From NCBI RefSeq assembly GCF_000143415.4, contig NW_003314272.1, forward strand, positions 2,133,728-2,197,727: DNA of 64,000 bases. The letters run 5' to 3'. The first letter of the stretch is position 1. Each line of letters starts with the position of its first letter. The notes under the pieces are model-generated. The model saw only the letters and a program-made list of their open reading frames with translations. It ran no database searches and was not told where the DNA came from. The DNA comes from Selaginella moellendorffii (lineage: Eukaryota; Plantae; Lycopodiophyta). The translations under genes were made by a program, and so were the position numbers. Shown here piece after piece: positions 1 through 49,959 of this stretch.

Positions 1-2446
1 CATGTCGCATGAAATAAGGTTGACCATGTTAGCAATCATAAGTTGTTGTGCTTGTAGAATTCTCTGGCAGCCACCCCTCTTCGATCCTTTCCAATGTTGT
101 GTTGATGTAAGTGTCGAAAGATATGAATGTGCCATCTAGATCATCACTAATGTGTGGTGCCAAGAACTTCTTATAGTTTGCGTGATGTACACAGCCCTTC
201 TCATCATGTTCTCAAATAGTTTTGGCAGTCCTTTTTCTCTGTTCATCAAGCAAACATTGAGGAACTCCAGAGTCTCTATCTGTTGCTTATATGGAAGCTT
301 CGATTTTGTGATATTGTAAATCATGTCATCTGGAGTTTTGTTCATTGCAAAAGTAACATATGCATAATTAAGAAAAATGAAGTGTGATAAGAAACTTACA
401 TTCATGAGAAGAAATTTTGGCTATAGTCTCTAGCCACTCCTTTGGCCTGTGATTGTCTACAATACATACTAGTTTCTTCAACTTTGAGGATTTTGCATGT
501 TGAATTTTGTGCTCAATTTGTACAAACTCAGCTGAGAGCTCTTCTCGATTCTTCTCTGGATATGCAAGTTCGTAGGCATCTTGCTTGACCTTCACCAAAG
601 GCTAAAAACCAAAACAATTAAAAGAGGCTTTTATAAAATAAAAGGGAAAGACATACCTTACACCACACAGCGAGTATAAAACTGATTGGGTTGTTGAACC
701 AAGTTGTACTGTCATTTCAAGTGCATAAGTGCTGAACAAGTGTTGCGAGATCATCATCATAATGTTGGCGGATGTCATCCTCACTCAAGTCTGCCAAAAA
801 TTGAAGTTATTCGATGTCATGGACAAGGTTTTTTTTTACCTCTAACTCCACTTTAACTTGTTTTGTTGTGTTTAAATGTAGGCTTGGGCAGTTCGCTGTT
901 CAAAAACTATAAAACTTACGCATTGATCTTTTGGCAAGCCAAGATAAGTCTGTTGACATCCAAAGGTCCCCTCGCATAGGCATGGCCGACTAGAATGTTG
1001 ATATGGTAGATGGGATCATCGCAAAAATGATCGTCAATACACTTCATCCAAGTTCCATATCAGTTGTTACCATCAATAATTTCCCCATAAGTTGTCGAGT
1101 CTCAGGATGTCTGATAAGCATGTCATCAAATTCTAGGGACTTCCTCCTCCAAATAGGATCCTAGCTATTCACAATCTTGGGTGTGATAGTAATGATCTCC
1201 GTTGTTCCTGGCTTGCAAAAACAGACTAGAAACATACCAATATTTGTTGCAAGGCCATTCTGTTTGAACAAGCTGTATATATTTGAGTTCATATATTTGG
1301 ATGCTATGCGGACAAAGTTCGTCTACTGCAAACAGCAAAGGGGGATTTCTCTAATCAAGTCATAAGGGCCTGGCCACTTGAGTGCTTCAAGTGTTTGGTG
1401 AACTGTTTTTTTCCTTGTCCACATAATAGTCTCTTGGAAGCGCTTGTCCACCATATTGTCAGGAAGGTCTGCAACTCTTTCAGCTCTAGGCTCTTCCTCA
1501 AGTTCCATATCGTGAACACCACTAGATTGCCCAACTTTAGGGATTTGCATTGGTGGTGGTGGCAGTGGCGGCGGGGGCAGAGGCAATAGTGGTAGTGGTG
1601 GTGGCAATGGTGGTGGTGGCAGTGGCGATGGTAGTGGTGGAGGTGGTGATGGCAGAGGTGATGGTGGTGGAGGCGGTGAATCTCAAACTAAATGTGTCTC
1701 TGTTGTGCCAATTGTCGATCGTGATATCATTAGATTGAACTTCTCGTGTCTTCTTGGCTCCAACAACCTTTTTATGTGTTACAATTTTCCTTTTCTGCAA
1801 GAGAAAAAATTTTGTTAGTCAAACTAAATAAAGATAATGAGAAATTCAAACAGTTAAAGTAAATCAAGTGGGCCTAGACTCCACCTCGGGCACTTTAGTT
1901 GCCTAAGGCGCTGAGGTTATTCAAATAACCTCAGCCCCCTGGGCAGCCAAAGTGCCCGAGGTGGCCAGCCCGAGCTCAACCTCGGGCAATTTGGCCAAGG
2001 TTATTCATATAACCTCGGCCCCTCAGCTAGCAAAACTACCCGAGGTGGCCGGCCCGAGCTCGACATCAGGCAGTTTGGCCACCCGAGGGGCCGAGGTTAT
2101 TCAAATAACCTTGGCCCCTCGGCCAGCAAAACTGCCCAAGGTGGTGGGCCCGAGCTCGACCTCGGGCAGTTTGGCCACCCGAGGGGCCGAGGTTATTCAA
2201 ATAACCTCGGCCCCTCGGCTAGCAAAACTGCCCGAGGCAGTCGGCCCACACTTAACCTCAGGCAGTTTGGCCACCCGAGGGGCCGATGTTTTTCAAATAA
2301 CCTCAGCCCCTCAGCCAGCAAAACTGCCCGAGGTGGCCAGCCCTAAAGAAGCAATCAAGAAAAAACAAGAAGAAAAAATGGAAGTGGAAGCAATCAAATC
2401 GAAACTCACCCTTAGTGGCATCTTTCCTTCCTAATTTCTTGATCAT
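1..2446 (-). pseudogene. Accessory gene of MULE-like copy A (ParB-like N-terminal part; runs off the window start)
   Basis: Short first exon MIKKLGRKDATK|gtgagt (2446-2410), then a poly-Pro exon and KRFQET...LKW...IREIPLC. The minus strand near 1035-1080 reads IIDGNN*YGTWMKCID (TGA probably from CGA). Colinear with the copies at 11191+ and 27337+, with short GT-AG introns. Confidence 0.8.
1883..2341. repeat. About 5 tandem GC-rich hairpin units (~96-bp period) in intron 1 of accessory gene A
   Basis: Each unit contains the palindrome CCGAGGGGCCGAGGTTAT-TCAA-ATAACCTCGGCCCCTCGG, flanked by CCTCGGGCAGTTT...AAACTGCCCGAGG. The 32-aa repeat in ORF 1952-2434 reflects this period. Confidence 0.85.
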
Positions 2447-2461
2447 GCTGGATTTCTTGTG

Positions 2462-3565: not shown

Positions 3566-5971
3566 ATGATGGAGAGGTTTCTTCTTCATTTTCGAGATCA
3601 CCCACTTCTTTTATTCTCTCAGAGGATTGTTTCTGAAAGTTTTTTATATCGGCATTTTGATCTTTGTCTTAGCTCTATTTCTTTAGAGGCTATGATTTGC
3701 AACGACACTGGTATAGTTGCATACTCAGAGTTTCTTCTTTCTGGTGTGGGCAAGGGTGGACAACAATGGGATTTATAGAATTCCAAGTCAAAGAAAATTC
3801 AAGTGTTTGGATCTCCAATCAAAATGCTAAAATGCGCTCCAACTAAAGTGAATGTGAAGCAAGAGTTAGTCGTTATCCTCTTGTCCTCTTCTAATTCAAG
3901 TGGAGAAGTCATGCTAGTGTCGGTGCCGAATTCACCAGCTCCAGCTCCAACTTCAGCAATATTCAAAGCCGTTAGCAATGCTTTCCAGTTTTCACGCCTC
4001 TTAATCAACGTGCACTTGTTTTTGTATAGGCTTGTGAGTGAGCTTCCATCCTCCTACAACGGCAACATTTTCTTCGAGCTACCACCTCTTGTCAGAAGCA
4101 CAGGTTCCAAACGGAAGGGGATGGAAACCAAACAGGATGTCCACAATTGGTGCAAGATCAAGACCACACACTTCCAACATTTTGAAGGCATAGTGTCTAT
4201 AGTTCATTGTGGCGGGCATTTAGATTGTGTGGATGAAGCATGCAATCTAGACCGCTCTAGAAACTCTATATTTCTCAAAGGGTCTACAGTTAATCCTCAA
4301 GCCTGTGACACCATTGCTGTTGGATTCAAATGTCGATTCTACAAAAATGCTCCTCTATGTCGTGCTATCTACAAGGCCAAGATGTACTACTTTCTTCCAT
4401 GGGATGGAGTGGCTAGAAGAGCTGTAGTGCATGTTGGCACATATATGCATCCAATGCAAGAAGGGATACAAAAGAGTTCTCTTAAACGTTTCAAAGATGT
4501 TGTGCAAGAAGAGATTATGAGAAACTCATCTGCAACTCCGAAGCATATTCAGAAGACCATCCTCAAGGATTTTATCACAAACACCTTACTCAATCCAAGT
4601 TGCCAAAAAACTTAACTAAACGAGGCTAGCTTGTGGGACTTACTACGAGGAGTACAACTTGCTACTAGCCTAAGGAGGTACATTCGTTATTTTTTATAAT
4701 AATAATTTTTTCTTACATTATATTGTTTAGGATAAAATCTTGAATGTGTGAATCTCGAGAAGGGAAGTTGCAATTAAAAATTGACTTTATCTTTGAATTG
4801 AAATGGACCTGTCCATACGAGTTCATCCATGGAAGTTTGTTTCTAGACCAAGTTGTGAATGAGCAAGAGCACCCTTTCATCTTCAAAATGTTTACCATGG
4901 GCCTTGCCTCTGATGTAAATCTTGTCTCCCGAATGGACATGTTTAGGTCTAGTGACCTTGCAAATGCATTGGTACATTTTGACCATATGGAGCGCGTATC
5001 AGGTTGGACAACCATGGGAGCTCATGTGTATGATCCAAGGTAATTTTTATTCTCATTATATTGAAATTGTTATAATATTTGTGTTTTTATAGGCTATGTT
5101 GTAAGTTAACAATTGCAACAACAGAGTTTAAAGTACAAGCCCAGACAGCACAAGAAATATTTTGGAAGTCCCTCTCTGATATTGTCCTAAAGCGGACTGG
5201 TAAGCTTGCAAACTTTCACGGTTTTATGGCAGATGGGGCTGGTGTAAACTGGAATGGTATCCGAGTAGTTTTTGGGAATGGTCAGCTATTGGAAGGTCGT
5301 GAGAGGACTTGTGAGTTCCATTGGGCTCAAAGCCTAAACCAGCACTGCCACCTTATCAAGCCAGAGTTTCAATCAATATTTAAGGAGTTGTGCAAACAAT
5401 GGCAGGTTGCACCTTCTGAAGAAGAGCATGAGGCAAAAGCAAACGAGATTCGAATTTGGTGGCGTGAAGATGGCCATATAGACATAAGTTGCATACCACA
5501 ACTTGAGTCATGGTTAGGATGGTGGGAAGTTAGGATATTCTAGTGGGGATATCACTCTTTTCAGGTTGGTTTGTATTTTTTCTTCTCCTTTTATTACCTT
5601 TTAATATTCCCTTTTCCATTAGGATCAACCACTTGAGGACCTCGCATACACCCCAACTGTGAATCTCTCCGAAAGTAAGCACTAGAGTTGGCATTCCTCT
5701 AAGGCAGGGAAAGGGAAGATGAGTCTATATAAAACCTATCTATCAAATTTAGTACGTGCTATAGAGCAATCTTCAAAAGCACTGGCATTTGAGGAAGGAA
5801 GCTATATGGGAACAGGGCCTTCTGTTAAGATGTTACATGATAGGATGAAGAGAAAATTAATTCCACCCGCCCGAACAGTGGCAACTGCAATTGAGGAAGT
5901 GGTCCGTAGCACATATATGGAGTACACTCCCTGAGCTTCTATTGGTGATATGAAGACTGTCTACTCAAAGG
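3566..5971 (+). pseudogene. MULE (Mutator-superfamily)-like DDE transposase, copy A, truncated by the next element
   Basis: N-terminal Cys/His region (CGGHLDC...C; HVGTYMHP), catalytic-core motifs FHGFMADGAGVNWNGI, ERTCEFHW and PTVNLSESKH (~5653-5682). Introns at about 4678-4730, 5040-5092 and 5565-5622. In-frame stops. Confidence 0.75.
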
Positions 5972-6614
5972 AGCGTGGACCATACTTGAGCTTACGAGCT
6001 GAAGAGTTGAGCTCATGAGTTGAGCTCAATTTTCAATTGTAATTTAGTACAAATATTATAAAATTTAAAATTTTAAAGTTATGGCGAACTTAATAATTTC
6101 ATAACTCTCTATATATTATATAGATAAAATTGTTCTAAAGGACACTTCTTGTTCTAATAATTTAAATATTTACTACATGCAATAATAGAGACATTTGTTA
6201 GAATATAAAATAAAATGTTTGCAAAAAGAGTATTCTTGTCACTTCTTTAAATTTGTACTCTGTGCTTTCTAGCTAGTAAATGTTAGGTTTGTCAGAATTT
6301 TAAAATTATTAAATTTGAATTAAGATTCTATATAAGGCCATATAACCATTTGAAAGGGAAAAAAAACAACTGTGATGGTACATATGCTCTCACAATACAT
6401 TGTAACATCATACACCCGAAAGACTATCACGAAATATTTTTTTAGAAGGTAAAGACAAAAATGGAGACTCACAAATACTATGGGCAGTATTGCGAAAAGA
6501 ACCTCACAAGTATATAAAATGAAAAGTGAAATAATAAAATATTTTTATTAATTATATAAGGTATAATTAGTTTATATTATTGATAGAGAATAAACATCAA
6601 TATTGCTAAAAAAT

Positions 6615-8611
6615 CTAATTAGCTCCAAAAGTTTTCTGCAACTCGGCAATAGTAAGGCTTGCTTGGTGTATATGAATATCCACTTTAGGATCTTGGTGCA
6701 AGATGTTGATGAAGATGTAGTACATATGCTTACAAGGAGCATATACCTTCCTATGTTCCTCGCACTTCGTAAAGTTTGGACATGTGCAAGAAGAAAAGTC
6801 TTGAATGGCAATTGTGTACTTTCCACCTTCTGTTTTGACTGTGTACTCCTTCGCGAGCACAGTGATGTACTTGATGGAGAGAATCTCACACTTAAGTGTT
6901 TGACCCAAGTTTATTTTACCTTGCTTCCACCATTCCAATTAGCCCCATCCTCATCTGCCACGAAACCGCGAAAGTTGGCAGGCTTACCAGTCCGCTTCAA
7001 TACAATGTCGGAGAGCAACTTCCAAAATATTTCCTGAGCCATCTAGTCTTGTACTTTAAATTCTACCGTTGCAATTGTCAAGTTACAATGTAGCCTATGA
7101 AGAACACAATATTTAAAACCATTTTAAGATAATGAGAAAAAAAACTACCTCGGATCATATACATGAGCTCCCATGGTTGTCCAACCCGCCACCCGCTCTA
7201 TATGGTCAAAATGTACCTATGCATTAGCAAAGTCACTCGACCTAGACATATCCATTTGGGAAACAAGATCCACACCAGAGGCAGGGCCCATGGTAGACAT
7301 TTTGAAAATGAAGGGGCGCTCTTGCTCACTAACGACTTGATCTGGAAATAAATTACCATGGATAAACTCATAGGGACAAGTCCATTTTAATTCAAGGATT
7401 GAGTCGATTTTTTATTGGAGTTTCCCCTCTCGAGATTCACACATCCAAGACTTTATCCTAAATAAAACAAAATGTAAGAGAGATATTATTGAAAAGTATG
7501 TAATAATATTTTCATACCTCTTGAGGCTAGTTGCAGATTGCACATGTCATAGTAACTCCCGCAAGCTAGCCTCATCCAGTTGAGTATTCTTGTAGTCCGG
7601 ATCAAGTAAAGTATTTGCGATAAAATCCTTAAGCACTATCTTTTGAACATGCTTCGAAGTTGCAGATGAGTTTCTCACAGTCTCTATCTGCACTGCATCT
7701 TTGAAATGGTTGATTGAACTCCTTTGTATCCCTTCCTGCATTGGATGTGTGTGCGTGCCAATATGTACTGCATCTCTACTAACCTCTCCATCCCGTGGAA
7801 GAAAATAGTACATCTTGGCCCCGCAGATGGCACGACACAATGGAGCATTCTTGCAAAACCGACACTTGAATCGAACACCAATGGTGTCACAGAGGGGAGG
7901 ATTGGTTGTAGATCCTTCAAAAAATATGGAGTTTTTACCACGCTCTCGATTGCATGCTTTATTTACACAATCCAAATACCCACCACAATGAACCATGGAC
8001 ATTGTGCCTTTGAAATGCTGGAAATGTGTGGTCTTGATCTTGCACCAGTTGTGGACATCCTGCTTCATCTCCATCCCCTTTCGTTTTGAGCTGACAAGAG
8101 GTGGTAGTTCAAAGAAGATATTGCCATTGTATGTAGATGGGAGCTCACTAACAGGCCTATGCAGAAAGGAATGAACATCAATAGAGAGGCGGGAAAACTG
8201 GAAAGCGTTGCAAACAGCTTGGAATATCAATGAAGTTGGAGTTTGGAAATTCTTGGCTCGCACTGGACTAACATCTCCACTAGAACTAGAAGAGGAAAAA
8301 ATGATGATGACTGACTCTTGCTTCACATTCACTTTAGTAGGATCACAGCCTCGCACTTTGATTGGAGATCCAAAAACTTGAATCTCTTTCGACTTGGAAT
8401 GTTGGAAATCCCAATGTTGTCCATCTTCACCTACACCTGAAAGAAGAAACTCCGATCGTTCAACTACACCAATGTTGTTGCAAATCACAACTTCCAATAA
8501 AATAGAACTGAGAGAAAGATCAAAATGTCGGCAAAGAAAACTTTATGAAATAAGACTTTAGGAGAAAGAAAGCGGTGGGTGATTTTGGTAATGCAAAAGG
8601 AAGCCCTCCAT
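6615..8611 (-). pseudogene. MULE-like transposase copy B, internally deleted, with C-terminal SWIM zinc finger
   Basis: ORF 7547-8497 is highly similar to ORF 3803-4615. The region ends in SWIM motif SCTCPNF...PCKHMYYIF (6615-6938). The ERTCEFHW and E-motif region is missing near 6950. Confidence 0.8.
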
Positions 8612-8773
8612 TTTGTTGCTTTTAGGTTTGGGAACTCTGAACTTTTATAACGAAATGTCACCTCACATGTGCCATGCCATTATGTGAAAAGATAGGGCGA
8701 TTTTATTCTAGGATTTAACATCGAATAATGCTGTTATAATAAATTCTATATGAAGTATATAGGACTATGTTGT

Positions 8774-9503
8774 TGTAGCGCATGTGATCATGGGATGAGA
8801 TTTGGATATACTGTCACCATGGATCCTTGGAACCTTGGGGGATAAATGGGGATAAAATAGCCACTAAGGGCTCTCTCATCAAGCAATTGCCCCTTTTCCA
8901 ATTGGCTTAAGGGGAGAGAGATAATGTGTGCTACAATTGGTATCGGAGCAAATGGCACGGGTTCGATTCCCATTGATTAGTGGCTACTTAAAAGTATAAT
9001 ATACCCTTGAGCAAGGTATATTCCTACCACTAAAATTTGAAATCGTACGTATTGGGCATCCATGCGTACGTTCTTCCTCTTGTGTAGAGTATCCACGGAC
9101 GAAGGTATCCACCGTGGGACTGCGGTACGGATGGATGACTAATTGCCTCATATGGAATAGCTGGTCTACACAATGGAAGGATTGGTAGATTGACTAGTTG
9201 CCTCACATGGAATAGCTGGTCTACACAATTGAAGGATTGGTAGATTGAGTGCGAAAATGGAGGTGCTGGTTCCCCTTGGCTCAGTAGGGGTTATTAGTTA
9301 ATAGTGAATGAGGACATTGACATTTTTGAAGGGGGGGTGAGTGTAGCGCATGTGATCATGGGATGAGATTTGGATATACTGTCACCATGGATCCTTGGAA
9401 CTTTGGGGGATAAATGGGGATAAAATAGCCACTAAGGGCTCTCTCATCAAGCAATTGCCCCTTTTCCAATTGGCTTAAGGGGAGAGAGATAAGGTGTGCT
9501 ACA
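8774..9503 (+). mobile_element. Complete TRIM (non-coding mini LTR retrotransposon), 730 bp
   Basis: Two 162-bp LTRs (8774-8935 and 9342-9503, TG...CA), PBS TGGTATCGGAGC (iMet-type) after LTR1, PPT GAAGGGGGGG before LTR2, 5-bp TSD GTTGT. Confidence 0.95.
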
Positions 9504-9986
9504 GTTGTACAATATTAAAAGTCTATATACATTAAATTCAAAAACATACTCAAATTTATTATATGCACTAACTTTTGGTAGAACGGAAAGAAATATCGCC
9601 TCAAGCATGTGTCATAATATGAAAGATAGGAATGATTTTATTTTAGGATCTACCATCAACCAATTGTTGCCAAATAAATTAAATATTGTACATATTTTTA
9701 GTACTTCATTAAAGCTAGATATCATCACATTCTTCTAAACTCATTTAAATATATTCCATCTTTGTACTACCATCTATCACCTATAGTAAATTATCTATAT
9801 ACATTGCTTTGGAAATAACACTTTACGATTTAATAATCTTATATTTTCTAACAATGTCGTACTGTAATCAATTCAACACATGCGTCTGTGACATTATTTC
9901 AAATTATGATATAGTCATATTAGAGCACACCTCCATTATTAAATTACACTTTGTCACTTTATCACTTTGTCACGTGATCAAATCTA

Positions 9987-10278: not shown

Positions 10279-10399
10279 TGTGATAAAAGTTAGGTTAGGG
10301 TTAGGGCAACCGCCAGCATTAGGGTTTTATAGAAAGTAGAGCAGGAGATTGGGAGTGACTGCAGAGTAAGTTTTTTCTCCTCCTCCACTCCCTCTCCTC

Positions 10400-11135
10400 C
10401 CCGCACAGCGCCGGCGCACCCAGCGCACCCGCACTCACGCTACGCCCAGCGCCGCCACGCCCAACACTACCGCGCCCACACCATGCCATGCTCAGCACCG
10501 CCACTACCTAGGGCTGCCAAGCGCTGCCCACTGCCATGCCACGCCCAGCACAGCACTGCCTAGGTCCGCCGCTGCCCCGCATCGCCCACGCCACGCCACG
10601 CCAGCGCCGCACTGCCTAGGGCCACCGCTGCCCAGCACCGCCACTGCCAAGTGCCCAGGCCGGGCATTTGGCTGGGCACTCCGCCTGGGCCAGCCATGGC
10701 AGGCCGGTATGCCGGCAAACCAGTGCCAAAGCCAACTGCCTGCACCAAGTCTGTGCAGGCTAGCCAAGGCACTTGGCCGGCAAAGGCGCCAAGTGCTTGT
10801 GCCAAATGCCCACGCTGGGCATTTGGCACGAGCCAGCCAAGTCCAAGTGCCCAGGCCAAGGGTCCCGAGGCACTTGGCGTGCACCGGCCTTGGCGCTTGG
10901 TGCGGGCGCCGGTCCGCCTCCAAGTGCCAAGGCCGGCTGGGGCCAAATGCCCGGGACTGGCACTTGGTGCGAGCCGGCCTTGGCGCTTGGAGGTGGGCTG
11001 GTTCGCCAGCGAACTGGTCCACCTCCAAGCGCCAAGGCAAGGTTCTCAGGCGGTTGGCCTTGGCGCGGGCCGGCCAAGGTGCTTGGGGGTGGCCTGGTTC
11101 GCCAGCGAACCGGCGCCTGTACCAAGCCCACACCC
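10400..11135. repeat. GC-rich degenerate repeat array (CTTGGC/GCCAAG core) in intron 1 of accessory gene B
   Basis: Many GCACTTGGC, GCCAAGTGC and CCTTGGCGCTTGG motifs on both strands, between the gtaag donor (~10366) and the ttttcag acceptor (11190). Confidence 0.7.
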
Positions 11136-14100: not shown

Positions 14101-14571
14101 CCGGTCAAGTTGCCTTCATTCTCCCGAATGACCCCCATTGGATGTCCTACGTTATGAGGTATGCAAGTTGAGTCAACTTCAAGAGGTTCTCTTCCGGGTG
14201 CATCATGGATAGTGTTGGGGTCGAGACCAAAGGTGTCCTAGGCATGCCAGAGAAGGTAAAAAATCATCTTCTATTTTGGTTATCTCTAAAGTTTTATTAT
14301 CCAGGTTATGATGTGGACCTACCATGTGTTCTGCAGAAGAGAAAATGACGGTTTTTGTGATAGTGAGCGTGCTGCAAGGGTTTTGCCAGAGTATGATAGC
14401 TTTACTGACATCATACCAAATCTCATAGACGACGACATCTGCAACACATTGTCTGGGTATCAGTTCTGATCTCCATCGGCAATGCATGTCCTACTTGAGC
14501 TTTATTTCCCAACTAGGGGTGTTGTCATCGATTGCACAGTAGGTAGTGGTTCGATGGTCGAAGCAACACGG

Positions 14572-16378: not shown

Positions 16379-16880
16379 CACGGGACTCTGGTAGATTGGT
16401 GTTTGTGATTGAAGAATATGAGTTCTCCAAATGCCGTCTTCGAGGTTTTCGTCCTTCTCTATCAGTTTCTTCTAGGAGGTAATTTATGATGTTTTAAAAA
16501 CTTATAAATAATATATATTTAGTTTTCTAGAAGTCTTCCTAGGTATGCATGGCACATCATATGCAATGTGTAAATTGAGGAGTGGTATGAAAAATCTATT
16601 TATTAATGATACATTAAAAGACAATTGAATGCATCCACTTGCAATAAGAAAGATGTGTCACATATCAATGTGATAATGATTGTGACACTAATAGTTTCAG
16701 TGCAGCAGATAGCGACAGTGATAGTGTTAGTGACAGAGACAATGTCAGTGTCAGAGATGACAAAGTTACAGTGTCAGTCTATCAAATTTCATAATTACTA
16801 GTATTATCAGTTTATTATCTATAGGTAATACAATTTTGTTAATACAAAAAAGGCGAGAGGCGGGGGGGGGATGAATAATA

Positions 16881-19002: not shown

Positions 19003-19093
19003 ATTTCTCCAACACTATCGATGTTTATTCTCTATCAATAAAACTTATTATACTTTATATAATTAATAAAAATGTGCTTTTTCATTTCACATT

Positions 19094-37900: not shown

Positions 37901-38093
37901 CACGCCTCCTCTGATTCAGATTCGGATTGTTCACCTTGAAATAAAATACATTAGAAACTTAGTAAAGGAATATTAATGAATCTCACCTTGAACCCTGTTA
38001 GGCACCAGGTCAGGATAATAGGATAAAGAAAGGGCCCTGCAATCAAGTGATCACCCCTTTAGCCAGTTGGCTTAGGGTGTAAGGGATAAGATC

Positions 38094-40907
38094 CTAACAA
38101 ACCCGGGTTATGAATGCTCTTGCTGCATCTCTTGCATGGTCTGGCAAGGTGATGGTGGCACTCTGCTTCGGCATCCAACCATGCACAACATTATCCACCG
38201 ATATGCTCATGCTGGGATCCCTTGGATTCAGCACCCATCTCTTTTCTAGGCAATCCTTCGTATATCCGGAACTTGGCTTGAACCACTCCACAGTTACATA
38301 GAAGGAGTTAGTTTCCGCGTCCTCCTCTGCATCAGTGATGCAGCGCCCCACCCATATCATTTGTTTTTTATTACTGGGTCTGATAAGCACGACCATTCCT
38401 TTGCAGACCTGTACTGGATTGAATGTTGAATCCAGCTTCTTGTTCCTCAGCCCACAATAGTGATCCTCAACATCGTTATCTGTCACTGCATTTCCAGAGG
38501 ACATTGTTCCACTACTATCTGGTGCTCTAGGTTCTGGCCAAAAGGACTCTTCCAATTCTTCATATACAACCGGCCCATTTTGGATAGTAGATATAATCTT
38601 CTCCCAGTATTCGAGCAAAGGCTTGCACCTCTTAAAATAGGATTCTCCACCAAACACCAACCCCCTCTTCCAGAAGGCAATATGCTATCTAATCCCGGCC
38701 ACTATACTTTCCTAGTCTTTGAGTCCATCCGGGTGCATCGGCCGTGGGGAACCCTGAGGAATCATAGGTTCCCCAGTTATGGGATCTCTCTTGAAGAGTT
38801 CAATGCCATCCACTGGTAGCCACACTGTGTCCCATTCTCTCATCTTGTACCTCATCACTGGAGCACCGTCACGCATGCTGAAATGAAACTGAAGAGGCTT
38901 GGAGTGGCCAATCAGCGTTTCGGATCCGTCCCTGATGTAGCCTCTTACAAACCCCTTAAAGTCTGAAACCTCTGTCACAAGTGCAGCTTCAACAGTGCCT
39001 TTGATGCAATTTTGGAATTCATCGTAGAGTTGTGGGAGGGTGAGGACATTGGATTACCGGAGGGACTCTGCCAGGTGACTGAACATGGCATCGACGTCTT
39101 CATGAGTGTGCCCAACCATGAGAAAGCCAAGTGTAACCGTTTCAAATATGCCTTTGGCAACAAGCATCGCCAAGTACGCGAAGACATACATGTTTTTGTT
39201 CTCACTGCCAGCATTGTCTGTTTGGAGTAGAAGATGGGGTGGAAGGCCACATCGGCCGCAAGAACTTCCTTGAGATTCTGCTTCGTTTGGATGAGGCTGT
39301 GCATTCACCGGGCAACCAGCCTCGTCGGAATGGCATGAGGCCTCATGTGATAACCCTACAATCTGACGGCCAACATATTCACTGGGATGGCATGGGGCCC
39401 CATGCGATACTGCAAGCCTTTCCTCCTCCTCCAGCTGAACCCTGTATGGGGTTCGATCGACAAGGGCCTTATGTAAGGGTTGGCCGTTCGGCTCAGTCTG
39501 CGCACTTTGCAGAGACCTTAAGTGTTTTGCTAGGGACGCAATCATCATGTTTGCACCCCCACCACCCCATAGAGGTACAAAGAAGTTCCCATAGTTCTGG
39601 GCACCATGCCCATGAGCGATTATGCCAAACAGAGACACAGGCAGCTGCATGGATGAAGAGATTGCCTTGGGGGCAGGATTGAGTTGAGGTAAGCACATCT
39701 TTTTCTGGTCCATTTTGTCGTGGATGATGCAGAGGTAAGAGTCAGGTCTCTCCATGGAGAGAATCTTGTTATGATAATATGCAGTCCTGTAGCTTCTCTG
39801 CTCAATGTTGTGGTCGAGCCGCCTTCTAACCAACGTCTCTCACTCTTGAGCGATGCAAGAATTCTTCGACAAAGCCATTTTGATAGCAGTGCACTCGTCA
39901 CACTTTGAAAAGTTGGAGTACTTTCCTATACTCACATCCCTGAACCTATTGCTCCACAATCTACTAAATCTAGATTGGCTCAGCTTTCTGTAGCCATTAC
40001 TCTGGAGTTCCCGATTCACATCTTCCAATATGGCCCCCTTGGTATACATGGAAGGGAGAACTTGTTGGGTGTCTCGAGTTCCATCTTCTAAGAGGCGGGT
40101 TTTATGTGGTTGCTGCTCGCTACATATCTCGACAAACCTCTTGAAGATTGCCTCTCCATATACAACATAACCCCTGGTTTTGTGAGTACCGTCGTTCCCA
40201 TGGACTGCCTATTGAACCCTTTGTTCCTCGAACTCAGTTTTGATTCTGTAGAATGTGCTTCGAGGGACTCCATAAATGATTCTCCATGCCTTCATGCAGA
40301 CCAAACCCCTCTGGAAAACCATGCGCCCCACCTGATATTCTGAAGCATCAACAGATGACTGTAATGCCTCATACACAAAATTGCGAGCTGCCTTCCAGGA
40401 TAATGTCTTGTATCTTGCTCTCTCCTCTTCAATAGCATCCCAATCAGCATGTTGACAGTACCTCCTCTTGCAACAAGCAACTGTCGAGACCATTCGAACC
40501 TCCATCGCCATTTTCTACCTTTTCGGTTCGTTGCTCAGATCCCTTTGGCTGCGCTTTAGGAAGGTGTACTTTCTTTTCCCATGAAGAGATGTTCTGTCAT
40601 CAGTTGTAGTGGTGTTTGATTGTGAATCCTTCACATTCTCAAACACTAAGTGCCTCAATTTCCACCGCACAATGCTTCCAATAGTCAGACTGTTTTCTTC
40701 TGTGTCAACAACCTCTAAAATCACAACTCCAATATCATCCCAGCCCAATTCTTGATTAGCAACCGCATCTCTTGGATCGACAACTGTGGCTAAGCCCTCA
40801 GCTACCACCTCCCCCTCGGGGTTGTTTAGAAACACCTTTGCCTGAATCCATGTAGCACGGTTCTTAAGATCCACGGAGGGAACATGCATCGCACTTGTGG
40901 AGGCCAT
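38094..40907 (-). pseudogene. Sola-type DDD transposase with N-terminal Tnp1/En/Spm-like domain and C-terminal BAH/Tudor-like barrel
   Basis: CCKRRYC, VCMKAWRIIYGV, SKCDEC; catalytic-type motifs IIHDKMDQ, LQTDNAGSENKN and FLMVGHTHEDVDAMFS. Split by premature stops and frameshifts. Confidence 0.75.
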
Positions 40908-41059
40908 TCTGAAAGTGCAGAAAAGAAGTTAAGACCATACAAAAAATGATTGGAGAATGGCCTAAATCATAACATACCAAACAACCTCAATAGCATGAGG
41001 CCACATGCCATTATTCAAACATGCTATTGACACCCACGTGAAATTTCGCATTCACAAAA

Positions 41060-41287
41060 TTGGCATGAGCCCTCATGCCATTAGTGGTACCACTAATGGC
41101 ATGAGGCCTCACGCTATCTTTGGCCCCTGCTAGCCTATTGCTATATTCCTGTTGCCTTGCTGCAACTGTATATATTTTTGTGTGCGTAACTAGTCACCCA
41201 TACAAAAATATATACAGTTGCAGCAAGGCAAAAGGAATATGGCAATAGGCTAGTAGGGGCCAAAGATGGCATGAGGCCTCATGCCAT
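41060..41287. repeat. Nested inverted repeats: ~56-bp palindrome centred on GGTACC and a ~90-bp-arm hairpin
   Basis: 41096-41185 pairs with about 41199-41287. The arms end in the 22-bp motif. Confidence 0.9.
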
Positions 41288-42437
41288 CTTGATATACACA
41301 CAGCTGCAGGCAAGTAAAAACATACATGACAATACGCTAGCCATGAAATTGCAAGGGCCCAAGATGGCATGTGGCCTCATGCCATTTCTAAATGTGGTCC
41401 TAAGCCATTCCATGGTGAACATACCAAGAAGCACAAGTGCCGAATATCAAGAGGAAGCAGTAGCCACACCAAAGACAGTGCCGCTCACAACACTGCAACT
41501 ACTCGTAGTGCCGCTCGCAACACCGCAACTACTTGTAGCGCCGCTCGCAACACCGCAACTGCTCGTAGCGCCGCTCGCACAAACTGCCACTCGCATAAAC
41601 TGTCGCTCGCAATGGCGCTCGCAATGCCGCAACCACTCGTAGACGCATAAACCACAGCTCACAACGCTGCTTACACAAGCAGCGCTCATTGCACTCAGCG
41701 GAACCAAGAACACGGCGCACAAAAATGATAGACCTAGGAATGAGTTTGAGAATTCAAAAATAACACACGCTTGAACATCACATCAAATCCTCTGACAAAC
41801 CAGATCTTATGATTCCTCTGACAAATTTCAAACTGAGTAGCTTCTAGACTTTGCTGTCGGAGGTTGAACTTTGTCACATCATGTCCTTGCCTCGATCCAG
41901 CTGTGCCATGTCAGTGATTCAAACTTTGCCATGCCGTGTCAGCGATCCGCGCCAAGATTATTCGCTGTGTAAAGGAATAATTATGCTGTGTGTGTACGTC
42001 CATTTATGGCAATATAAAGCCACACGCCATTCAAAGAATAATGCTAGTCGAGCATTTTTTGGTGCATTTTTGGGTTCAAAATTGCATGAGCCCACACGCT
42101 ATAAAGTTTACCTGTACCAAAAATAGAAACAGCTTTATTTACTTGGGAATTTAAGTGGTTGAGGCATTTTTAAACTTACAAACACATGCCCTACTTACAT
42201 TCCTTTGGTTGCTTAAAATTCAAAAATATTATAAACCTTTCTTTTTGCATTTTCAATGTTTTCAATTATGGTTTTTGATTTTCGCAGGACCAGCCTAGTA
42301 ATCTATTTGCATCCCGTCATGTTTATAGCTAGCTTTCATTTGTCCCCTTCGCTAGCCTGAGATACATCTGCTCGGCATCTGCCTCTTACAGCATTTGCCC
42401 AGAAAGGGCATCTTTCTTCACGTAGCATTTGCCACAT

Positions 42438-42463
42438 GTTTAGGGTTTAGGGTTTAGGGTTTA
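42438..42463. promoter_or_regulatory. Telo-box (TTTAGGG x3) in the divergent promoter region of the Sola-like element
   Basis: TTTAGGGTTTAGGGTTTAGGGTTTAG. Confidence 0.5.
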
Positions 42464-43519
42464 GCAATTCAATAGCTTGATAAACATGCAAATACAGAAC
42501 TTGATGCAAAATCCTTTAATATGTCACAATGCCCCTAGGACCATAAACACATTTCAATAGAGGGTCCTTTCATTTCATAACTCCTTACGTAGATCTTGGT
42601 GAAACCAGAGTTAGTGAAGTTAGTTTCTTGTGATCCCGCATCTGATTGTGATGTCCCTTTGCAGTGTCAATGGAAAGGTCAATGCACACCAAACTGTAAA
42701 ATCTTGGAGCAAAATAACGGTCGGATCTATGGCAAATGCCCCTGAAACATTGTAAGGCTCGTGTGGTCTCATGTGGTGTCTGATCGAGATGCTTCTTTGC
42801 AGGGTCATCAAAAAGGACATTGTATACCATTCTTTATTTAACTGAACATCTGGCATTTTTGGAAATACAAGATGCTTTGGAATATCCAATCATGCATGGT
42901 ATAAATATAGCGAGGGTATTAAATGATATCCCAATCATGATCTTTCTTTTGGATTTCACGTGCATGCAGTCCAAGGAATGATGACGTTGCGGATTTCTTT
43001 TGGATTTCACGTGCATGCATGCGCGTGGCGATCCAGAAATTAATGGTGGCACCCAAGTCCGAGGAATGATGATGTTGCGGGATTACCAACCGTCGTGACA
43101 TTTCGCGCGTGTGAGGTTAGGTTTTGCATTTTTCTTCGTACTCGTGCTCGCACACTCGCGCTCACATCGCGCTCCCACTCGCGATCACGCTCACATTCGC
43201 GCTCATCTACCTTCTCTACAGGTTTCTCGTGTGCATCGGCGTCCACTCGCGCTTGCATCACACTCGCGCTCGCATCACGCTCGCATCGCGCTCGTGTGCA
43301 TCGGCGTCCACTTCAAGACACACCCAGTTTGTAACTTCGCCGCCAACTCCGCCGCCCACTCCGCCACCCACACGCAGCCCACTTGGCGTCCCGGGAGATT
43401 TCAGCGCCACTCTCCAACTGTAAGTGGCAGAGTAGCCTTGCTGCTACGATCCGCTGCACACACAGTGCACATTCGCCAGCGAGTCCGGCCTTGATTGTCA
43501 CGCCTCCATTCGGCTTCAA

Positions 43520-46500
43520 ATGGTAAGTCTTTTAGGCCAAGTAGAAAATGGCATGAGGCCACATGCCATTTAGTAGTAACATTGGCATGCACCGATTGGG
43601 CTCTCGAGTGCAGTCCGGTTACAGATGGCATGTAGCCTCACGCCATCTTAGGATGCAGCCTCAAGACATCTAATGCAGTGGTGAATGGCGTGTGGCCTCA
43701 CGTTATTTCCAGCTGCTAGCTTTTCATCTGTCAACTCTAATTGTTGTGCATTTCTGAACAGGCGAGGAATTGCGTTCTTCTTCCAGCCACTGTCAATGTG
43801 GATGCAGAGAAGGGGGAGGAGCTCACCAGTTGGACTTTCGGGATGGAAGGCGAGGATCTGAGGCTGTACAACACAGATGGTGGGAGAAAAGAATGCATGG
43901 GGATCCTCATCCAAGTGACAGACACTCCATGCAGTTCCATGCAAGAATATGGACTGGCACTTGTGGTAGAGACAGCATCCGCCTTCAAGATCCACCTTGC
44001 ACATTCTAGCGGCTTCCCGGAGGGGGCAGCGGCTATGAGGAATTCCTAGAGGGAGCTAGGGAGAGGTTGTCCAGGAGGCCCACAATTTCAAAGACGCTGC
44101 GGGTCTATGAAGATCACATGGAATCCACGGACCTCACCTACGGTGATGTTCAAAAACTATATTCCAACATTGAGCCGTTGAAAGTGCCTCCAGTTCGCGA
44201 AGCAAAGGGGAAGGGGGTCGATCTGAAAACAACCCCGAAGCAGAAAAGGGTGGTCCAGCTTAAGCCGACGTCCGACTCTCCTGCTCCAAAAAAGAAGCTA
44301 CTCGGTGATGCCATTGCCTCGGGTTCGAACACTACACCCACCAAAACGAAGAGCCGCAAAGAGCAGAAAGAGCAAGAAGAGGCAGCAAAAATCGTCGCAG
44401 ATAATAGTACTTGTTACTATTCCAACAAAGTATATACAATCGACGTGAGCCGTATCGACATCCAAAGCAAATACAACCACAGGCTAGTATCTAATGAGTG
44501 GGTGGAGAAACTGAAGCAGAAAAATGCTGGCAAGTCCAATAACACCCGACATCGCAGACGTGATCCCCTACTACCGAACAATGAAGGGCGAGACGAGGTT
44601 TCCAGACTTGATCAATAGGAAGGTGTTGGACGATCAGAACATCCGGTTCTATGCTGTCTCCGGGCAGCATTCTAGCTTGGCGATGCAAGAGATAGTTGTG
44701 GATATTATGGTGGGCGAGGAGGTGAAGAAAGTCTTCAAGACAAGAGTTGTTCGCCTGATAAAAGGCAACTCGCCCCTCCCATCTATCATATACATCTCCC
44801 ACACGCAGAATGTCAAGCAAGAAACGTGCTACAAATCGGGTCTACACGAGACATTGGCACGAACACGGAAGCTCTGGGTTCAACTGAAGAAGCCACAAAA
44901 ACCAGGACAAGGACGTGCACTAGCAACTAGCGCCTGGCAGGTAAGCCTCGTTGCATGTGGCATAGCATGTGGCCTCACGCCATTTCCATTGTAGGAATTC
45001 TTGAGTCTTCTCTCGAAAACACTGGGGGTCAATAACACACTCAGCATCCATAACATTCTACTTGCGACAAAAGTTGTTTTTGACAAATGGGTAGATGTGC
45101 TGAGGAGGTACCATGACGGGGAGTTGCTAAACTCAATGGGTGTGGAGGACGGCCGGAAGCCCAATGATTTGAAGCTCAACGCCTTGCGTTTCTCGCGGTC
45201 TCTAGACGACGACGACCTTCTGACAGTGGCTAATGCTCTTCTACGTGGTGAGGTAGTCTTCAACAAGACTAAAATGACTCCTGGCCATATTGTGACATAC
45301 GAGGACTTGTGCACGACTCTGAGAGCTCGTGCGCTATTGAAGGATTGGATCTTCAAGCAAGTGGCCGTGGAGAGGGTGAGCATCGACACCACGCAAGAGA
45401 TGATGGAAGAGCTGGAGTTGTCAAATGAAGACATCGACAAGTACGTGAAGGGGGCCCCCAAGTTCATCGATCTGCTGCGGGATGCCACGAAAAGTAAAAA
45501 TGAGAAGTTGGATCAGTATCCAAATTTCATTAAGAGGGATGTCGACTGCCGGCTTCAGAAACAGCTCGACCCCGCAGCAGAGGCCTATCGAGAACCTTAC
45601 CGGGTATACGTGAATTCGGATGAGGATCAAAGGTGGAGGAGCATCGTTTCCCACGGAGATGAGCAGGTCAAGAACATCTTTTGTGTGATGGATTTCACAA
45701 ACAAGGAGATCACTCATGCAGACGAAGTCAGCTCCATCATTGACTTAATGGTGGGACTTGCGGAGGTGGAATCTTTAGTCCACTATATGATCTACGACTT
45801 TGAATCCTATCACAAGTTCTAGAAGGCCTTGAACAAGGTGAAGGCTCGATTGAAAGGCAAGGAGATGCGGGAGATCCATGGGATAATGGCTAAGAAGAAG
45901 ATACCGACGAATGTCCGCATCTTCACACTCGCCCTTGTTATTGGTCCTGCAGCAGAGTGGGACTGGAGTGACTTCCCAACTTCGTTCGACAAGGCCGATC
46001 GAATTGATCTGAGGGAGGTCAATTTACCCGTGCCTGAGGAACTGAAGATGGCTATGGAGCTTTCGAATCCAGAGAAAGCTCCAGGTGCAACATGGGAAAT
46101 GCTCAGCTGGGTCTTCAACGCAATAGCGGGTGGGTCACCTGCTTCCGACTCCAAGGGCAAATGCGTTGTCGAGTACAACTGCGGCGGACTATTCTTTCGA
46201 GCCGCACTACTCAAGGGTGTCCCGTGTGTTGCGGTGACAAACTCCATTGAAGAGGTGACTTCAATGGAGCATATAATTACAGTTGCCAAAGAAAAACAGT
46301 ATCTTCTCTGCGAACCTGGTGAGTATGCACTTTAAGTTTAAATGTTATCTCACAAGCTCTGTATGCAGGAGCGTGGCCACCCCCAGATGCTGAAACGGCA
46401 TTAACAGCTACTGTTGAAGATACCCATGTTGGGCCGAGCTCACAACCTGCACAAGGTAAGGTCACGTGAGGCCTCACGCCATTTTGATTATAGATCGTTG

Positions 46501-48639
46501 TGAATATTCAAACATGAGGACTGAAAAGCGCACTGGTGGCGCGTCGAAGAAGGACAAACAGACAAGCAATAGGAAAAAAGGAGGTACAAATTATATTTGC
46601 AATGGCGTGTGGTCTCATGCCATTCCTTGCAGGAGACACTTCTTCAAAGGCAAAACAGGCAAGCACTAGCCAAGCTCAAACTGACAGTGGTCATAAAAAG
46701 CGAAAGCACGTTGGACAGTTGTCGGGATCAGAGGCGTTTGATTCGAAAAGGAAGAAGGGCAACGAAAAGATGATAGGTAATGCCTCGCGGTTATGGCGTG
46801 TGTGCTCATGCCATTCATCGCAGATCAAGGGCTGAGTGAAAGCAGCCAGTCACCACCTCCTGACTCAGATTCCTATGGCGGACTCCCCTTCCCCAATCTC
46901 AATGGAGAGGTACAATGGATGAGGGATGCTTTTCAAGTCAGGGCCACGTTTTTCTCATCTCGTCGTCTTCGAAGGGTGCAAGAACGTGCAGAAACCATGT
47001 TAAGACAGTCGGGTGAGGATACGGTCCTAGGTCACGCACTAAAACAGGCTATGGATGTCTTGTATTTTGAGATGGAGACTCGGCCAGATGATTTTCCCAA
47101 GATGGTCCTAGAAGAACAAGCCATCCAGCCTGAGCAGCCTATGGAAGAAATGCAAGAGGGGGATGAGGAGCCAGAGAAAGATAATGAGCAGGAAGAGCAG
47201 AAGGACTATGGATCCGCCAGTGGACTCTACTTGCCTGCAAGAGTCATCAGAGCTGGTGGAGGCTACTATCCATATCAACGCCAAGCAAGCTGACCACGCT
47301 CCACTTGATGCTGCCCATACCACTGAGTCAATCTTGTCCACGTATCCAACTGACGGTGACCAGGCGCCATTGGACCTGCATGAGGCCGCCCCAGACGCCG
47401 AGCCGGTCATATCCTCATTTCCAACGAACTCAACGTGTGCCCAATCGTCTGACTATGCGCCGTTGGAACCTCCCTACACCGCCCCTACTGCCTATTCGGT
47501 CATGTCCACTTTGCCAACGGAGGCACCAGCTGAAATGGTGTGTGATCACATGCCATCGGAACCACCCCATGCCACTATTGAGCCAGTTGTACCAGAGTCT
47601 ACAGCTGAAATGGCATGTGCCCACACGCCATCGGATGCGATTGACCCCACATTGCAGAGGAGAGTATTTCTGCCCTTCACATTTCCTCGACCAAAACCCT
47701 CTCAACGACCATCAGGAGCACCATTCGCTAATATTGTAGATGGTAAAATTGACTTGTACCATTTTTTATGCTGACGCATTTCATTTCAGAGTCACGGCGA
47801 AGGTATTGTATCGTTTTTGATCTGAACGGTGTCTTTTTCTCCCATGAGCGTGGCTCGTCCTCGAATGTCACCGCACCCTCCAAAGCCTGCGGTCGCAAGT
47901 TGGTCAAAAGAGACAGATTCACATTAATCACACGGGAGAAACTGTGGGATCTAATAATGACCATGCGACACTTAAAACAGAGGGTCGGGTTCAATTTGCA
48001 ATTGGGAGTTTGGACATCCATGATGCGCCACAATGCATTAACGTTGCTACAGATGATGCACGATCAGACGCGAGTAATATTACCATTTGACTTTCTCCTA
48101 ACGCAAGAGGAATTCTTGACTGGGGTAGCAAGCCCATCTTCGTCAAGCCAGAGGCTGTAGTGATGAACCGGACTGCTAGGTCAAGTGAACTCCTCATCAT
48201 CGATGACTCGCCGATTAAAACTGCAGCGAACACGCACACATATGCAATGCACCCCATCTCTTGCAGTATAGAAACTAGGGAGAAGAAACCGTATGTTCTG
48301 GGGGACCTTGCAAAACGGCTTGGAGTGATGGTGATAGAGAATCGGCCAGTCCAGGAGGTGGCTGCAGAAATCAACCAAATGGCAGATGGAACGGTATATC
48401 AGAAGCCATTTGATCGGACAGACACCAGTCATCATTTATGGCATGCATATTGTCTAGCCAAGCACTATCAGCATCTCCATAATCTACTCAACCGGATGGG
48501 TTCTTCGACCACTGAACATGAGCGTGGACGTATTAGAGAAGAGATGGCATTACTATTGGGTTTAAATCCTGATAGTGTGGAGAGTGATGAAATTCCAAGA
48601 TTATTGTATAGGAGTTGGAGGCAAAAAATAACAGTCTGA
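43520..48639 (+). pseudogene. Sola accessory gene: ParB-like domain + degenerate methyltransferase fold + disordered linker + FCP1-like HAD phosphatase domain
   Basis: YNHRLVSNEWVEKLKQK/MLASP...RFYAVSGQHSSLA (44472-44683); GKCVVEYNCGGLFFRAALLKGVPCVAV (~46156-46236); IVFDLNGV, VWTS, KPIFVK, LLIIDDSPIK (47810-48219). GT-AG introns at 43523-43760, 44941-44994, 46320-46368, ~46456-46493, 46585-46632, 46777-46823 and 47743-47789. Lesions at about 44047, 44520, 45820 and 48110. Confidence 0.7.
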
Positions 48640-49959
48640 GATGGCATGTATTTATTTAAAAATGTAACTTATTATGGCATGGGGTTCCATGCCATTGTAT
48701 TAATATTAAAAGACAATTCTTTGAGAGGATTTGCATTATACTAAAAGTGTTACAGCATGTTATTGGAAGTCTACGAAGTTGTTTTATTAATAAGGGGAAA
48801 GTAAAGATTGAATGGGGACTTGGGCTCCACCTAGACTCGGAGCAACTGAGCCAATATTAAAAGGATGGAAAGAAATTGGACGATGATGACAAGGAGAAGA
48901 GAGAGGTGAAGCAGTGGCAGGGGGAGAAGAAGTGATTGAGTAGACATTTCCTTGTTTAAAATAAAATGGCATGTGCCTCAATGTAGTTGAATTTTGTTAT
49001 ATTTATATACTATATAAAGGTTTGGAAACCTTACTTTACAATTGGGATAATGACAATTCCCACTTTAACGAAATAGAGCTTGATACCTTCGTCCGTAGAT
49101 ACTCCACACAAGAGGAAGGACGTACGCATGGATGCCCAATACGTACGATTTCAAATTTAGGGGTAGAAATATACCTTGCTCAAGGGTATATTATATTTTT
49201 AAGTAGCCACTAATCAATAGGAATTGAACCCATGCAATTTGCTCTAATACCAACTGTAGTGCACTTTATTTCTCTCCCCTTAAGCTAACTGGAAAAGGGG
49301 CAATTTCTTGATGAGAGAGCCCTTAGTGGCTATTTTATCCCCTAAGGTTCTAAGGATCCATGGTGACAATATATCCAAATCTCATCCCATAATCACATGC
49401 ACTACAACTGCTGAGAGTGATTGGTGATGGATCTATGAGTGTAGATAATATAGAATGGGTGTGGGGAATGTGTGAGGTATAGTAATGGTAAAGGAAGGGC
49501 CAAAAAACCTGAAACATAGACCAAGCCAAGTGAGGAACCTCTATACAAATGGCAATGCAGCTTGAGCACAAAATCCAAGGCAAAAGCCATGGTCCAGTTG
49601 AGAAACACCCTCTAAAAGTAAGAAAAGAAGCCATGAAAGTAAAGTGAAAGAAAGGTAGCAAAAGAAAAAGAAGAGAAGAAGAATGCCTCACTAGATGAAG
49701 CGTTTGAGGTGAGAGTGGTTGTGAGTGTGTGGGAGCTGTCCATCAACATTTACTAACACTTATGCTCCACCTTCAATGTGTTGTTGGACAAAGTAGGGGC
49801 TGGTCTAGTGAGGAGAGAATTTTGAAGGTGACATGAACTCCTTGAGTAAAACAAGATTGCCATCCTCAAATGGTTCACCAGACCGCTGGTGATCAATGAT
49901 TGACTTGATCTTCTGCTTGCCTTGAAGGAGATGTGTAGTCGTGGATTATCGGTGTTCTT

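Follow-up and report, generated by a model that had tools for sequence, protein, structure and literature searches.

The 64,000-nucleotide stretch of Selaginella moellendorffii DNA considered here (contig NW_003314272.1, positions 2,133,728 to 2,197,727 of the forward strand; the window below) is eukaryotic and filled with nested repeats. It probably represents a nest of old, decayed transposons in which two families, one Sola-type and one resembling the Mutator-like elements (MULEs), each carry an accessory gene with a ParB-like and a methylase-like part, placed divergently to the transposase and of the same kind as systems reported from algae. Self-comparison of the window defined three copies (A, B and C) of one MULE-like element. 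Together with the open reading frames (ORFs), it bears out an original prediction, made from the letters of this DNA, that these three copies and one Sola-type element contain divergent gene pairs: in all four, a transposase gene and a second gene stand head-to-head. The Sola-type element consists of the following parts.

36342-49081, no strand: Sola-type DNA transposon, 12,740 bp, with 28-bp terminal inverted repeats (TIRs) and the 4-bp target-site duplication (TSD) GATA at 36338-36341 and 49082-49085
38094-40907, reverse strand: Sola-type transposase gene in several exons, seen as ORFs, with a Pfam DUF7869 match (E=1.4e-30) on the ORF at 39054-39833
40989-43707, no strand: intergenic region of the divergent pair, with 9 palindromes
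44067-48639, forward strand: second gene, comprising a ParB_N-like part, a helical middle, a degenerate methylase-like part, an acidic part and a NIF/FCP1-like part
~44400-44940, forward strand: ParB_N-like part of the second gene
44941-44995, 46457-46494 and 46778-46824, forward strand: candidate short introns of the second gene, palindrome-bearing
45001-45600, forward strand: helical middle of the second gene
~45600-46335, forward strand: degenerate methylase-like part of the second gene, followed by the acidic part
47753-48636, forward strand: NIF/FCP1-like part of the second gene

The Sola-type element is a clean insertion. It has the TIRs and 4-bp TSD expected for the Sola superfamily, and two paralogues of the host repeat hold the uninterrupted site, with a single GATA. 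This repeat (~0.4-0.75 kb) is dispersed in the window, at 8757-9507, at 35999-36320 plus 49082-49408 (the target of the Sola-type element) and at 60520-60949; the first and last of these are the empty sites, and the first has an internal 166-bp duplication (8774-8939 and 9342-9507, 98%). The transposase, provisionally called Sola-type, has the Pfam DUF7869 match, and a literature search found no tie between DUF7869 and Sola. The original prediction had also given each element a repeated motif of its own, and this holds for both families, as dispersed 24-bp palindromes in the Sola-type element and as palindrome arrays with a period of ~96 bp in the three MULE-like copies. The 24-bp palindrome AATGGCATGAGGCCTCATGCCATT, searched as AATGGCRTG-N6-CAYGCCATT with at most three mismatches, was matched 25 times across the window (0.05 expected), and 23 of the matches fall within the Sola-type element. 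Within the element the sites lie in the left subterminal part (6 palindromes in 1.6 kb, compared with one near the right end), between the divergent genes and within short GT...AG interruptions of the reading frames. The two palindromes outside the element, at 61799-61997 and ~175 bp apart, may be a fragment of another Sola-type copy.

The second gene of the Sola-type element has relatives in ferns. An exhaustive search with a 273-amino-acid piece from its middle gave three true relatives, one of which is a 701-amino-acid protein of Adiantum nelumboides that carries a Pfam NIF domain and aligns collinearly to 44848-45612. Representative word and profile searches found this multi-copy family only in Adiantum (a fern) and a few further assemblies; it includes a full-length protein of 1246 amino acids and the more distant P0035 of 494 amino acids, to which the window head aligns at E=6e-5 (BLASTP). 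The fern homologues match Pfam NIF at E=1e-15 to 1e-17. Pfam NIF gave no match on the window pieces alone, and a profile of the fern NIF domains, run against 1534 six-frame pieces, ranked 47753-48157 best (E=2.9e-5) and 48091-48636 second (E=0.21), the two being collinear. These alignments show the Sola accessory gene to be homologous to multi-copy fern proteins with a Pfam NIF domain. A brown-algal origin of the window was considered and rejected, since ferns supplied the only homologues. The catalytic DxDx(T/V) of NIF/FCP1 (PF03031) is not kept: every fern homologue, like the window copy, has DLNG there. The NIF-like domain was found in the Sola gene only, not in the MULE gene. Neither this NIF/FCP1-like end nor the lack of conservation in the methylase-like and phosphatase-like catalytic motifs had figured in the original prediction.

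The Sola family is very high-copy, since 20,261 DNA contigs match the 4.8-kb region of the second gene. In the window copy, the reading frame of this gene is shifted by 1 bp at 44522 and interrupted by an in-frame TAG at 45820; the extra base at 44522 is absent from most other genomic copies, which read through (DNA contigs of a public run), the frameshift being private to the window copy. At 45 of the 58 majority differences over 43900-48700 (DNA run), the window copy has A or T and the other copies G or C, and this excess of G>A and C>T would be the pattern expected after deamination of methylated cytosines. Two stretches of 59-63 bp (46468-46529 and 46790-46848), with one palindrome each, are absent from some DNA copies; because their boundaries differ from those of the candidate GT...AG mini-introns, gain or loss of such palindrome-bearing pieces may occur at the DNA level.

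The three MULE-like copies, whose transposase regions are 75-81% identical to each other, comprise the following features.

167-1772, reverse strand: copy A second (accessory) gene, 64% identity to copy B 11723-13032, with its 3' part beyond the window edge
919-1415, reverse strand: copy A ParB-like candidate region, in the 5' part of the second gene
1868-2369, no strand: copy A palindrome array of five ~96-bp units, each one long hairpin-capable palindrome
3569-5969, forward strand: copy A transposase region, decayed, 75-78% identity to copies B and C, with ORFs, a CxxC...HxH finger and D...CxFH
5977-6927, no strand: copy B left long terminal inverted repeat, an inverted match (87-88%) to 18690-20066
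6929-8611, reverse strand: copy B transposase, 3'-truncated, 78-81% identity to A and C, with a 316-amino-acid ORF at 7547-8497
10397-11130, no strand: copy B palindrome array, G+C-rich, ~90-96-bp spacing
11169-14571, forward strand: copy B second gene up to a solo long terminal repeat (LTR), with a proline-rich start, ParB-like candidate, acidic middle and methylase-like end
11793-12302, forward strand: copy B ParB-like candidate, part of the second gene
13959-14571, forward strand: copy B methylase-like part, FDMPDG ... VIDCTVGSGSMVEA
14572-16378, no strand: solo LTR in copy B, splitting the methylase-like exon, with TG...CA ends and the 5-bp TSD CACGG
16379-16479, forward strand: copy B methylase-like exon, resumed past the solo LTR, DSGRLVFVIEEYEFSKCRLR
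18690-20066, no strand: copy B right long terminal inverted repeat, containing a ~435-bp insertion
24704-27050, reverse strand: copy C transposase region, decayed, 75% identity to A and 81% to B, in ORF pieces
27538-28244, no strand: copy C repeat and palindrome array, ~96-bp spacing
28405-28698 and 32569-33833, forward strand: copy C second gene, with a ParB-like candidate region, truncated past 33833, 72% and 83% identity to copy B
28697-32566, no strand: LTR retrotransposon splitting the copy C second gene, with 235-bp direct repeats (28697-28931 and 32332-32566) and gag/reverse transcriptase/integrase-like ORFs

Arrays of long palindromes with a period of ~96 bp lie between both genes in three of three MULE-like copies, at 1868-2369 in A, 10640-11130 in B and 27983-28244 in C, and the unit sequences differ by copy. 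The copy A array has a period of 96 in 3.7 copies with 87% matches (TRF) and inverted arms of 38-41 nt that are 88-92% complementary; the copy B array has direct families at spacings of 90 and 96 and inverted arms of 18-44 nt that are 73-94% complementary. The second gene of copy A is 50-67% identical to the copy B protein, with in-frame stops (tblastn). Copy B is enclosed by inverted repeats of ~950 bp with GGACCATACTTGAGC as their ends, and no TSD, for which 8-11 bp would be expected in a MULE, was found at these ends. Pfam, including MULE transposase profiles such as PF10551, gave no match for any transposase piece of copies A-C. Thus, of the element classes in the original prediction, the Sola-type ends were borne out by TIRs, TSD and empty sites, whereas the MULE class is not confirmed: because no Pfam model recognizes the transposase, the label 'MULE-like' refers to the long inverted ends and to two motifs picked out by eye, the CxxC...HxH finger and D...CxFH. 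In red algae, Plavaka elements were at first misfiled as MULEs owing to common accessory genes (bioRxiv 10.1101/2025.02.11.637652). A simple insertion of copy B into copy A was considered and rejected; the sequence past 20066 does not resume copy A. Downstream of the accessory gene, and still inside copy B, lies a duplicated ORF of 188 amino acids (16919-17414 and 17721-18287, reverse strand), which is cysteine/histidine-rich (CPICNFY...HCRKCP) and has no Pfam match.

Both second genes carry the ParB/Srx-type motif reported in the original prediction (YIIDGNH in the MULE gene, YAVSGQH in the Sola gene), and the two heads fared differently beyond it. For the Sola-type head, the fern homologue P0035 is informative. 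Of the 100 named neighbours of its residues 305-475 in the language-model features of the Atlas, 66 are ParB_N (29), DUF6551 (33) or both (4), and ParB_N families make up 7 of 10 structural family rows (TM by query 0.44-0.53), one of them consisting of bacterial ParB_N+N6_N4_Mtase fusions. These neighbours give moderate support to a ParB_N fold of the Sola-type head, and the signal is only moderate because the Atlas query model is of low confidence (predicted TM score, pTM, 0.34). A small ParB_N profile, made from six genuine ParB_N sequences (phages and one plasmid), was aligned to the Sola/fern family by hhalign. The match reached only P=0.056, but its register was as expected: YWIISGQHSISAAK faced Y.v.aG.rR..A, and S...N faced the EN box. 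Among the proteins retrieved by a profile search with the fern and window alignment, none had a Pfam ParB_N or N6_N4 domain. The GxxR arginine of CTP-binding box II is absent from both genes, with SGQHS/SGLHS in the Sola and fern family and DGNHC in the MULE gene. The closest feature neighbours of P0035 305-475 are eukaryotic (Cnidaria, and Ascomycota with DUF3723; score 0.95-0.96) and one structural neighbour is molluscan; because of these neighbours, we suggest that the ParB-like domain of P0035 is widespread in eukaryotes, possibly in other transposons too.

The ParB nature of the MULE second gene, which was likewise part of the original prediction, is not confirmed, and it is suggested by motifs. 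A word search found no homologue of the MULE ParB-like piece in the protein collection, and the Atlas neighbours of two window pieces, the MULE head included, were uninformative. By eye, the order IREIPL / KQNGLGTNI / YIIDGNH fits ParB_N, but ~50 residues part the second motif from the third. A second candidate motif, YHINVLVGHVHARG, lies at 12189-12302, 25 residues past YIIDGNH, and stands opposite SGQHS in a non-significant profile alignment.

The methylase-like tails were compared with a reference set of eight genuine PF01555 members (E. coli YhdJ, four plasmid and three phage methylases, each with Pfam E<=1e-36). The fern and window profile of the Sola family aligned to this set at P=2e-4 (hhalign), with INTTINAFNDEHEVVLDVFACGLASKVALLNHKKTIAV opposite the motif X-I-II block. 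The MULE piece was joined by removing the solo LTR, with an X placed at each break; it matched the set at p=1.4e-4 (hmmsearch) at VVIDCTVGSGSMVEATRDSGRLVFV, which corresponds to motif I, and at P=0.0056 (hhalign) over 212 collinear columns, with FDMPDG opposite DPPY. In this joined reading, motif I runs into the GR...E...Y block that is typical of N6_N4 methylases. When the 34-amino-acid piece before the LTR (14470-14571) was scanned against the 38,880 PHROGs families, the single match was phrog_3008, DNA methyltransferase (E=0.015). These signals are each weak, yet they are concordant in place and order, and they weakly support the view that both tails are methylase-like and of the beta class (motif IV before motifs X-I-II). 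The methyltransferase-like C-termini of the original prediction hold as a weak collinear similarity, but not as a Pfam match or as conserved catalytic motifs.

We propose that each accessory protein has a ParB/Srx-like DNA-binding head, which would be followed by a permuted N6/N4-methylase-like domain (motif IV before I) and, in the Sola family, by a NIF/FCP1-type phosphatase-like domain. The head may recognize the palindromes of its own element, that is, the 23 dispersed 24-bp sites in the Sola-type element and the ~96-bp hairpin arrays in the MULE-like element, and such recognition would concentrate the accessory protein on its own element. The tails could in turn target DNA, chromatin or RNA polymerase II and favour expression or transposition of the element, whether by anti-silencing or by self-marking. 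Because its catalytic motifs are changed (DPPY absent, FxGxG degenerate, DxDxT replaced by DLNG), at least the Sola-type tail is more likely a binding or scaffold module than an enzyme. It is reasonable to infer that the second genes serve self-recognition; the same role has already been put forward in publications on algal elements.

To our knowledge, transposon self-recognition has been proven only for VANDAL/VANC, in which the accessory protein finds motifs of its own element and changes the chromatin state. VANC of the Arabidopsis VANDAL MULEs resembles the Selaginella proteins in being a transposon accessory protein whose shown or proposed targets are short motifs enriched in non-coding DNA of the same element; however, VANC is neither ParB-like nor methylase-like, and its methylation loss is shown experimentally, whereas the Selaginella role is read from sequence. 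The original prediction had taken the arrangement to be undescribed. However, ParB/methylase accessory genes have been published for algal transposons and were proposed in 2025, without functional data, as a second class of self-recognition (PMC12477816; bioRxiv 10.1101/2025.02.11.637652). As precedent, these reports name Iyer et al. 2011 or VANDAL. In the Ectocarpus Sola1-1 family, an element of 21.5 kb has a gene on the opposite strand for a 1104-amino-acid protein with ParB-like and N4C/N6A methylase domains (PMC12477816). In the Bostrychia genome, PAG2 combines an N6-adenine methylase with SET and PAG3 a ParB-like domain with a 2-oxoglutarate (2OG) oxygenase; PAG3 is adjoined by tandem inverted-repeat arrays, and PAG genes occur in Plavaka, Mutator, Zisupton and Fanzor-bearing red-algal elements (bioRxiv 10.1101/2025.02.11.637652).

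By its published description, the accessory gene of Sola1-1_Ec32 is alike in lying in a giant Sola-type element, opposite the transposase, and in being proposed to bind and modify its own element. In contrast to it, the methylase-like part in Selaginella lacks Pfam recognition, DPPY and FxGxG and has a NIF/FCP1-like end fused to it, 23 dispersed 24-bp palindromes are documented in the element, the host is a land plant and the closest homologues are from ferns. PAG2 and PAG3 share a ParB-like head (HHpred E=0.29 in the preprint) and a PF01555 methylase on DNA transposons, inverted-repeat arrays beside the ParB-like gene and a spread over several superfamilies, Mutator included, but the red-algal domains sit on separate proteins, whereas the Selaginella candidates are on one gene, with a phosphatase-like domain added in the Sola-type element. 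The bacterial and phage ParB_N+N6_N4_Mtase fusions, one cluster of which is among the structural neighbours of P0035, have the same order of ParB_N and then a beta-class methylase. Unlike the plant proteins, these prokaryotic proteins keep GxxR and DPPY/FxGxG and score on Pfam. Introns, low-complexity linkers and additional domains are further features by which the plant proteins differ. MURB of maize MuDR is also the second gene of a Mutator element and needed besides the transposase, but it is without ParB or methylase features and the MuDR genes are convergent. A literature search found nothing on ferns, CTD (carboxy-terminal domain) phosphatase or DUF7869 in connection with such accessory genes; relative to the algal reports, three features appear to be new, namely the setting in land plants or ferns, the NIF-like fusion and the loss of catalytic motifs.

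The following results weigh against reading the second genes as ParB-like and methylase-like accessory genes. The original prediction had proposed a fold check against ParBc (PF02195) and PF01555, and Pfam was silent on both: ParB_N matched neither the window pieces nor the fern homologues, even with E allowed to reach 5-10, PF01555 gave none for any window piece or fern homologue, NCBIfam returned nothing for either, and sequence and profile searches of the PDB gave nothing relevant for ParB or methylase. The structural ParB_N signal comes from the low-confidence model of P0035 and not from the window protein, and the AlphaFold models of the 776-amino-acid fern protein P0010 (20-row alignment; pLDDT 38) and of the MULE ParB-like piece (pLDDT 37) are unusable. 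The MULE head aligned by hhalign at P=0.36 to ParB_N and at P=0.31-0.43 to the Sola-type head, which is chance level, and the register of YIIDGNH may be wrong, because the profile alignment prefers YHINVLVGHVHARG as the counterpart of SGQHS. In the tails, the catalytic (D/S)PP(Y/F) is not kept (FDMPDG in the MULE gene, VMDFTN in the Sola window copy, VLDAAHG in the fern proteins), and FxGxG, which survives in the MULE gene as VGSGS followed by GR...E, has degenerated in the Sola family to NCGGLF (window) and FACGLA/FACGHA (ferns). Stops and frameshifts make every element copy in the window a pseudogene. In an RNA-library assembly the seven matching contigs are all unspliced, two of them across candidate mini-introns, and for this reason the 38-55-nt mini-introns remain candidates; two raw RNA runs of the species label gave no matching reads, a valid negative only if the organism was present in those runs. 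Palindromic sites for a parS-like role are present, and their binding by the protein is a prediction only.

Several of these results would suit an explanation in which the ParB and methylase likeness is due to chance or too remote to matter, the second genes being unrelated captured or lineage-specific genes and the palindromes selfish hairpin repeats, or else small insertions piling up in the non-coding parts of the elements. No curated profile recognizes ParB or methylase, the two accessory proteins are dissimilar, the catalytic motifs are absent, and the 59-63-bp palindrome-bearing stretches missing from DNA contigs of other copies point to bits that come and go. We consider this unlikely: several independent weak signals agree with the prediction in both position and order, the same pair of domains in the same strand arrangement has Pfam-level support in Ectocarpus Sola1, and 23 palindromes are confined to one element against an expectation of 0.05. 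Still more improbable, in our judgement, is the reading of the original prediction, in which the Sola and MULE accessory genes derive from one cargo module recently exchanged between superfamilies in this genome. The two have the same order of candidate domains and the same head-to-head placement, and such genes have been reported as mobile among transposon families in red algae (bioRxiv 10.1101/2025.02.11.637652). However, tblastx between the MULE and Sola second genes gave nothing at E<=10 beyond low-complexity runs, profile-profile comparison of the two by hhalign remained at chance level (P=0.27-0.43), the NIF-like domain is confined to the Sola gene, and the MULE tail keeps GSGS and GR, both of which the Sola tail has lost. 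A common plan of both second genes is plausible, whereas a recent exchange is not supported by these comparisons. Because the accessory proteins of the two families are not detectably similar, the families probably acquired or kept the design separately.

A different role for the same genes also has to be weighed, namely that the accessory proteins are transposition cofactors like MURB and the palindromes sites at which transposase or cofactor pairs the ends (synapsis), with no part in silencing or marking. ParB proteins bridge and condense DNA, the accessory gene stands head-to-head with the transposase in every copy, and six palindromes crowd the left subterminal 1.6 kb of the Sola-type element. 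MURB, moreover, is required for new Mutator insertions and binds MURA (PMC12973397). The palindromes are nevertheless asymmetric, with one near the right end, and cluster between the promoters and in the candidate introns, while domains that resemble a methylase and a CTD phosphatase suggest a link to chromatin or transcription more than to strand transfer; a purely cofactor role thus seems doubtful to us, although somewhat less so than a chance likeness.

Under the preferred reading, in which both families carry ParB-like and methylase-like accessory genes of the algal kind, no new category is opened, as the system is of the same kind as those published. The design, known so far from algae, would then extend to land plants, with a very high-copy family that has fern relatives, and the phosphatase-like domain and the defined candidate binding sites (24-bp palindromes, 23 per element) would provide a concrete system for testing the self-recognition proposal. 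A bolder version, to which we give only a small chance, is that transposons of fern-lineage land plants encode a three-part pseudo-enzyme, made of a ParB-like clamp, an inactive methylase fold and a CTD-phosphatase-like domain, which would be loaded on dozens of element-specific palindromes (many in short introns of the element) and would shield the element from silencing or tune RNA polymerase II, the plan having been assembled or retained independently in the Sola-type and MULE-like families. If true, it would amount to a general, so far uncharacterized self-recognition strategy of eukaryotic transposons.

Retroelement remains make up a further part of the nest. The solo LTR of copy B (14572-16378) is one of three copies of an LTR-like repeat, the others lying at 54852-56612 (90%) and, inverted, at 22712-24339; the repeat has an internal array of 12- and 35-bp units (CTCGGACTCCAT...). 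Adjoining these LTR-like repeats is an inverted pair of ~2 kb (20574-22503 and 56727-58741, 75% identity), which is probably an internal part of the same retroelement family.

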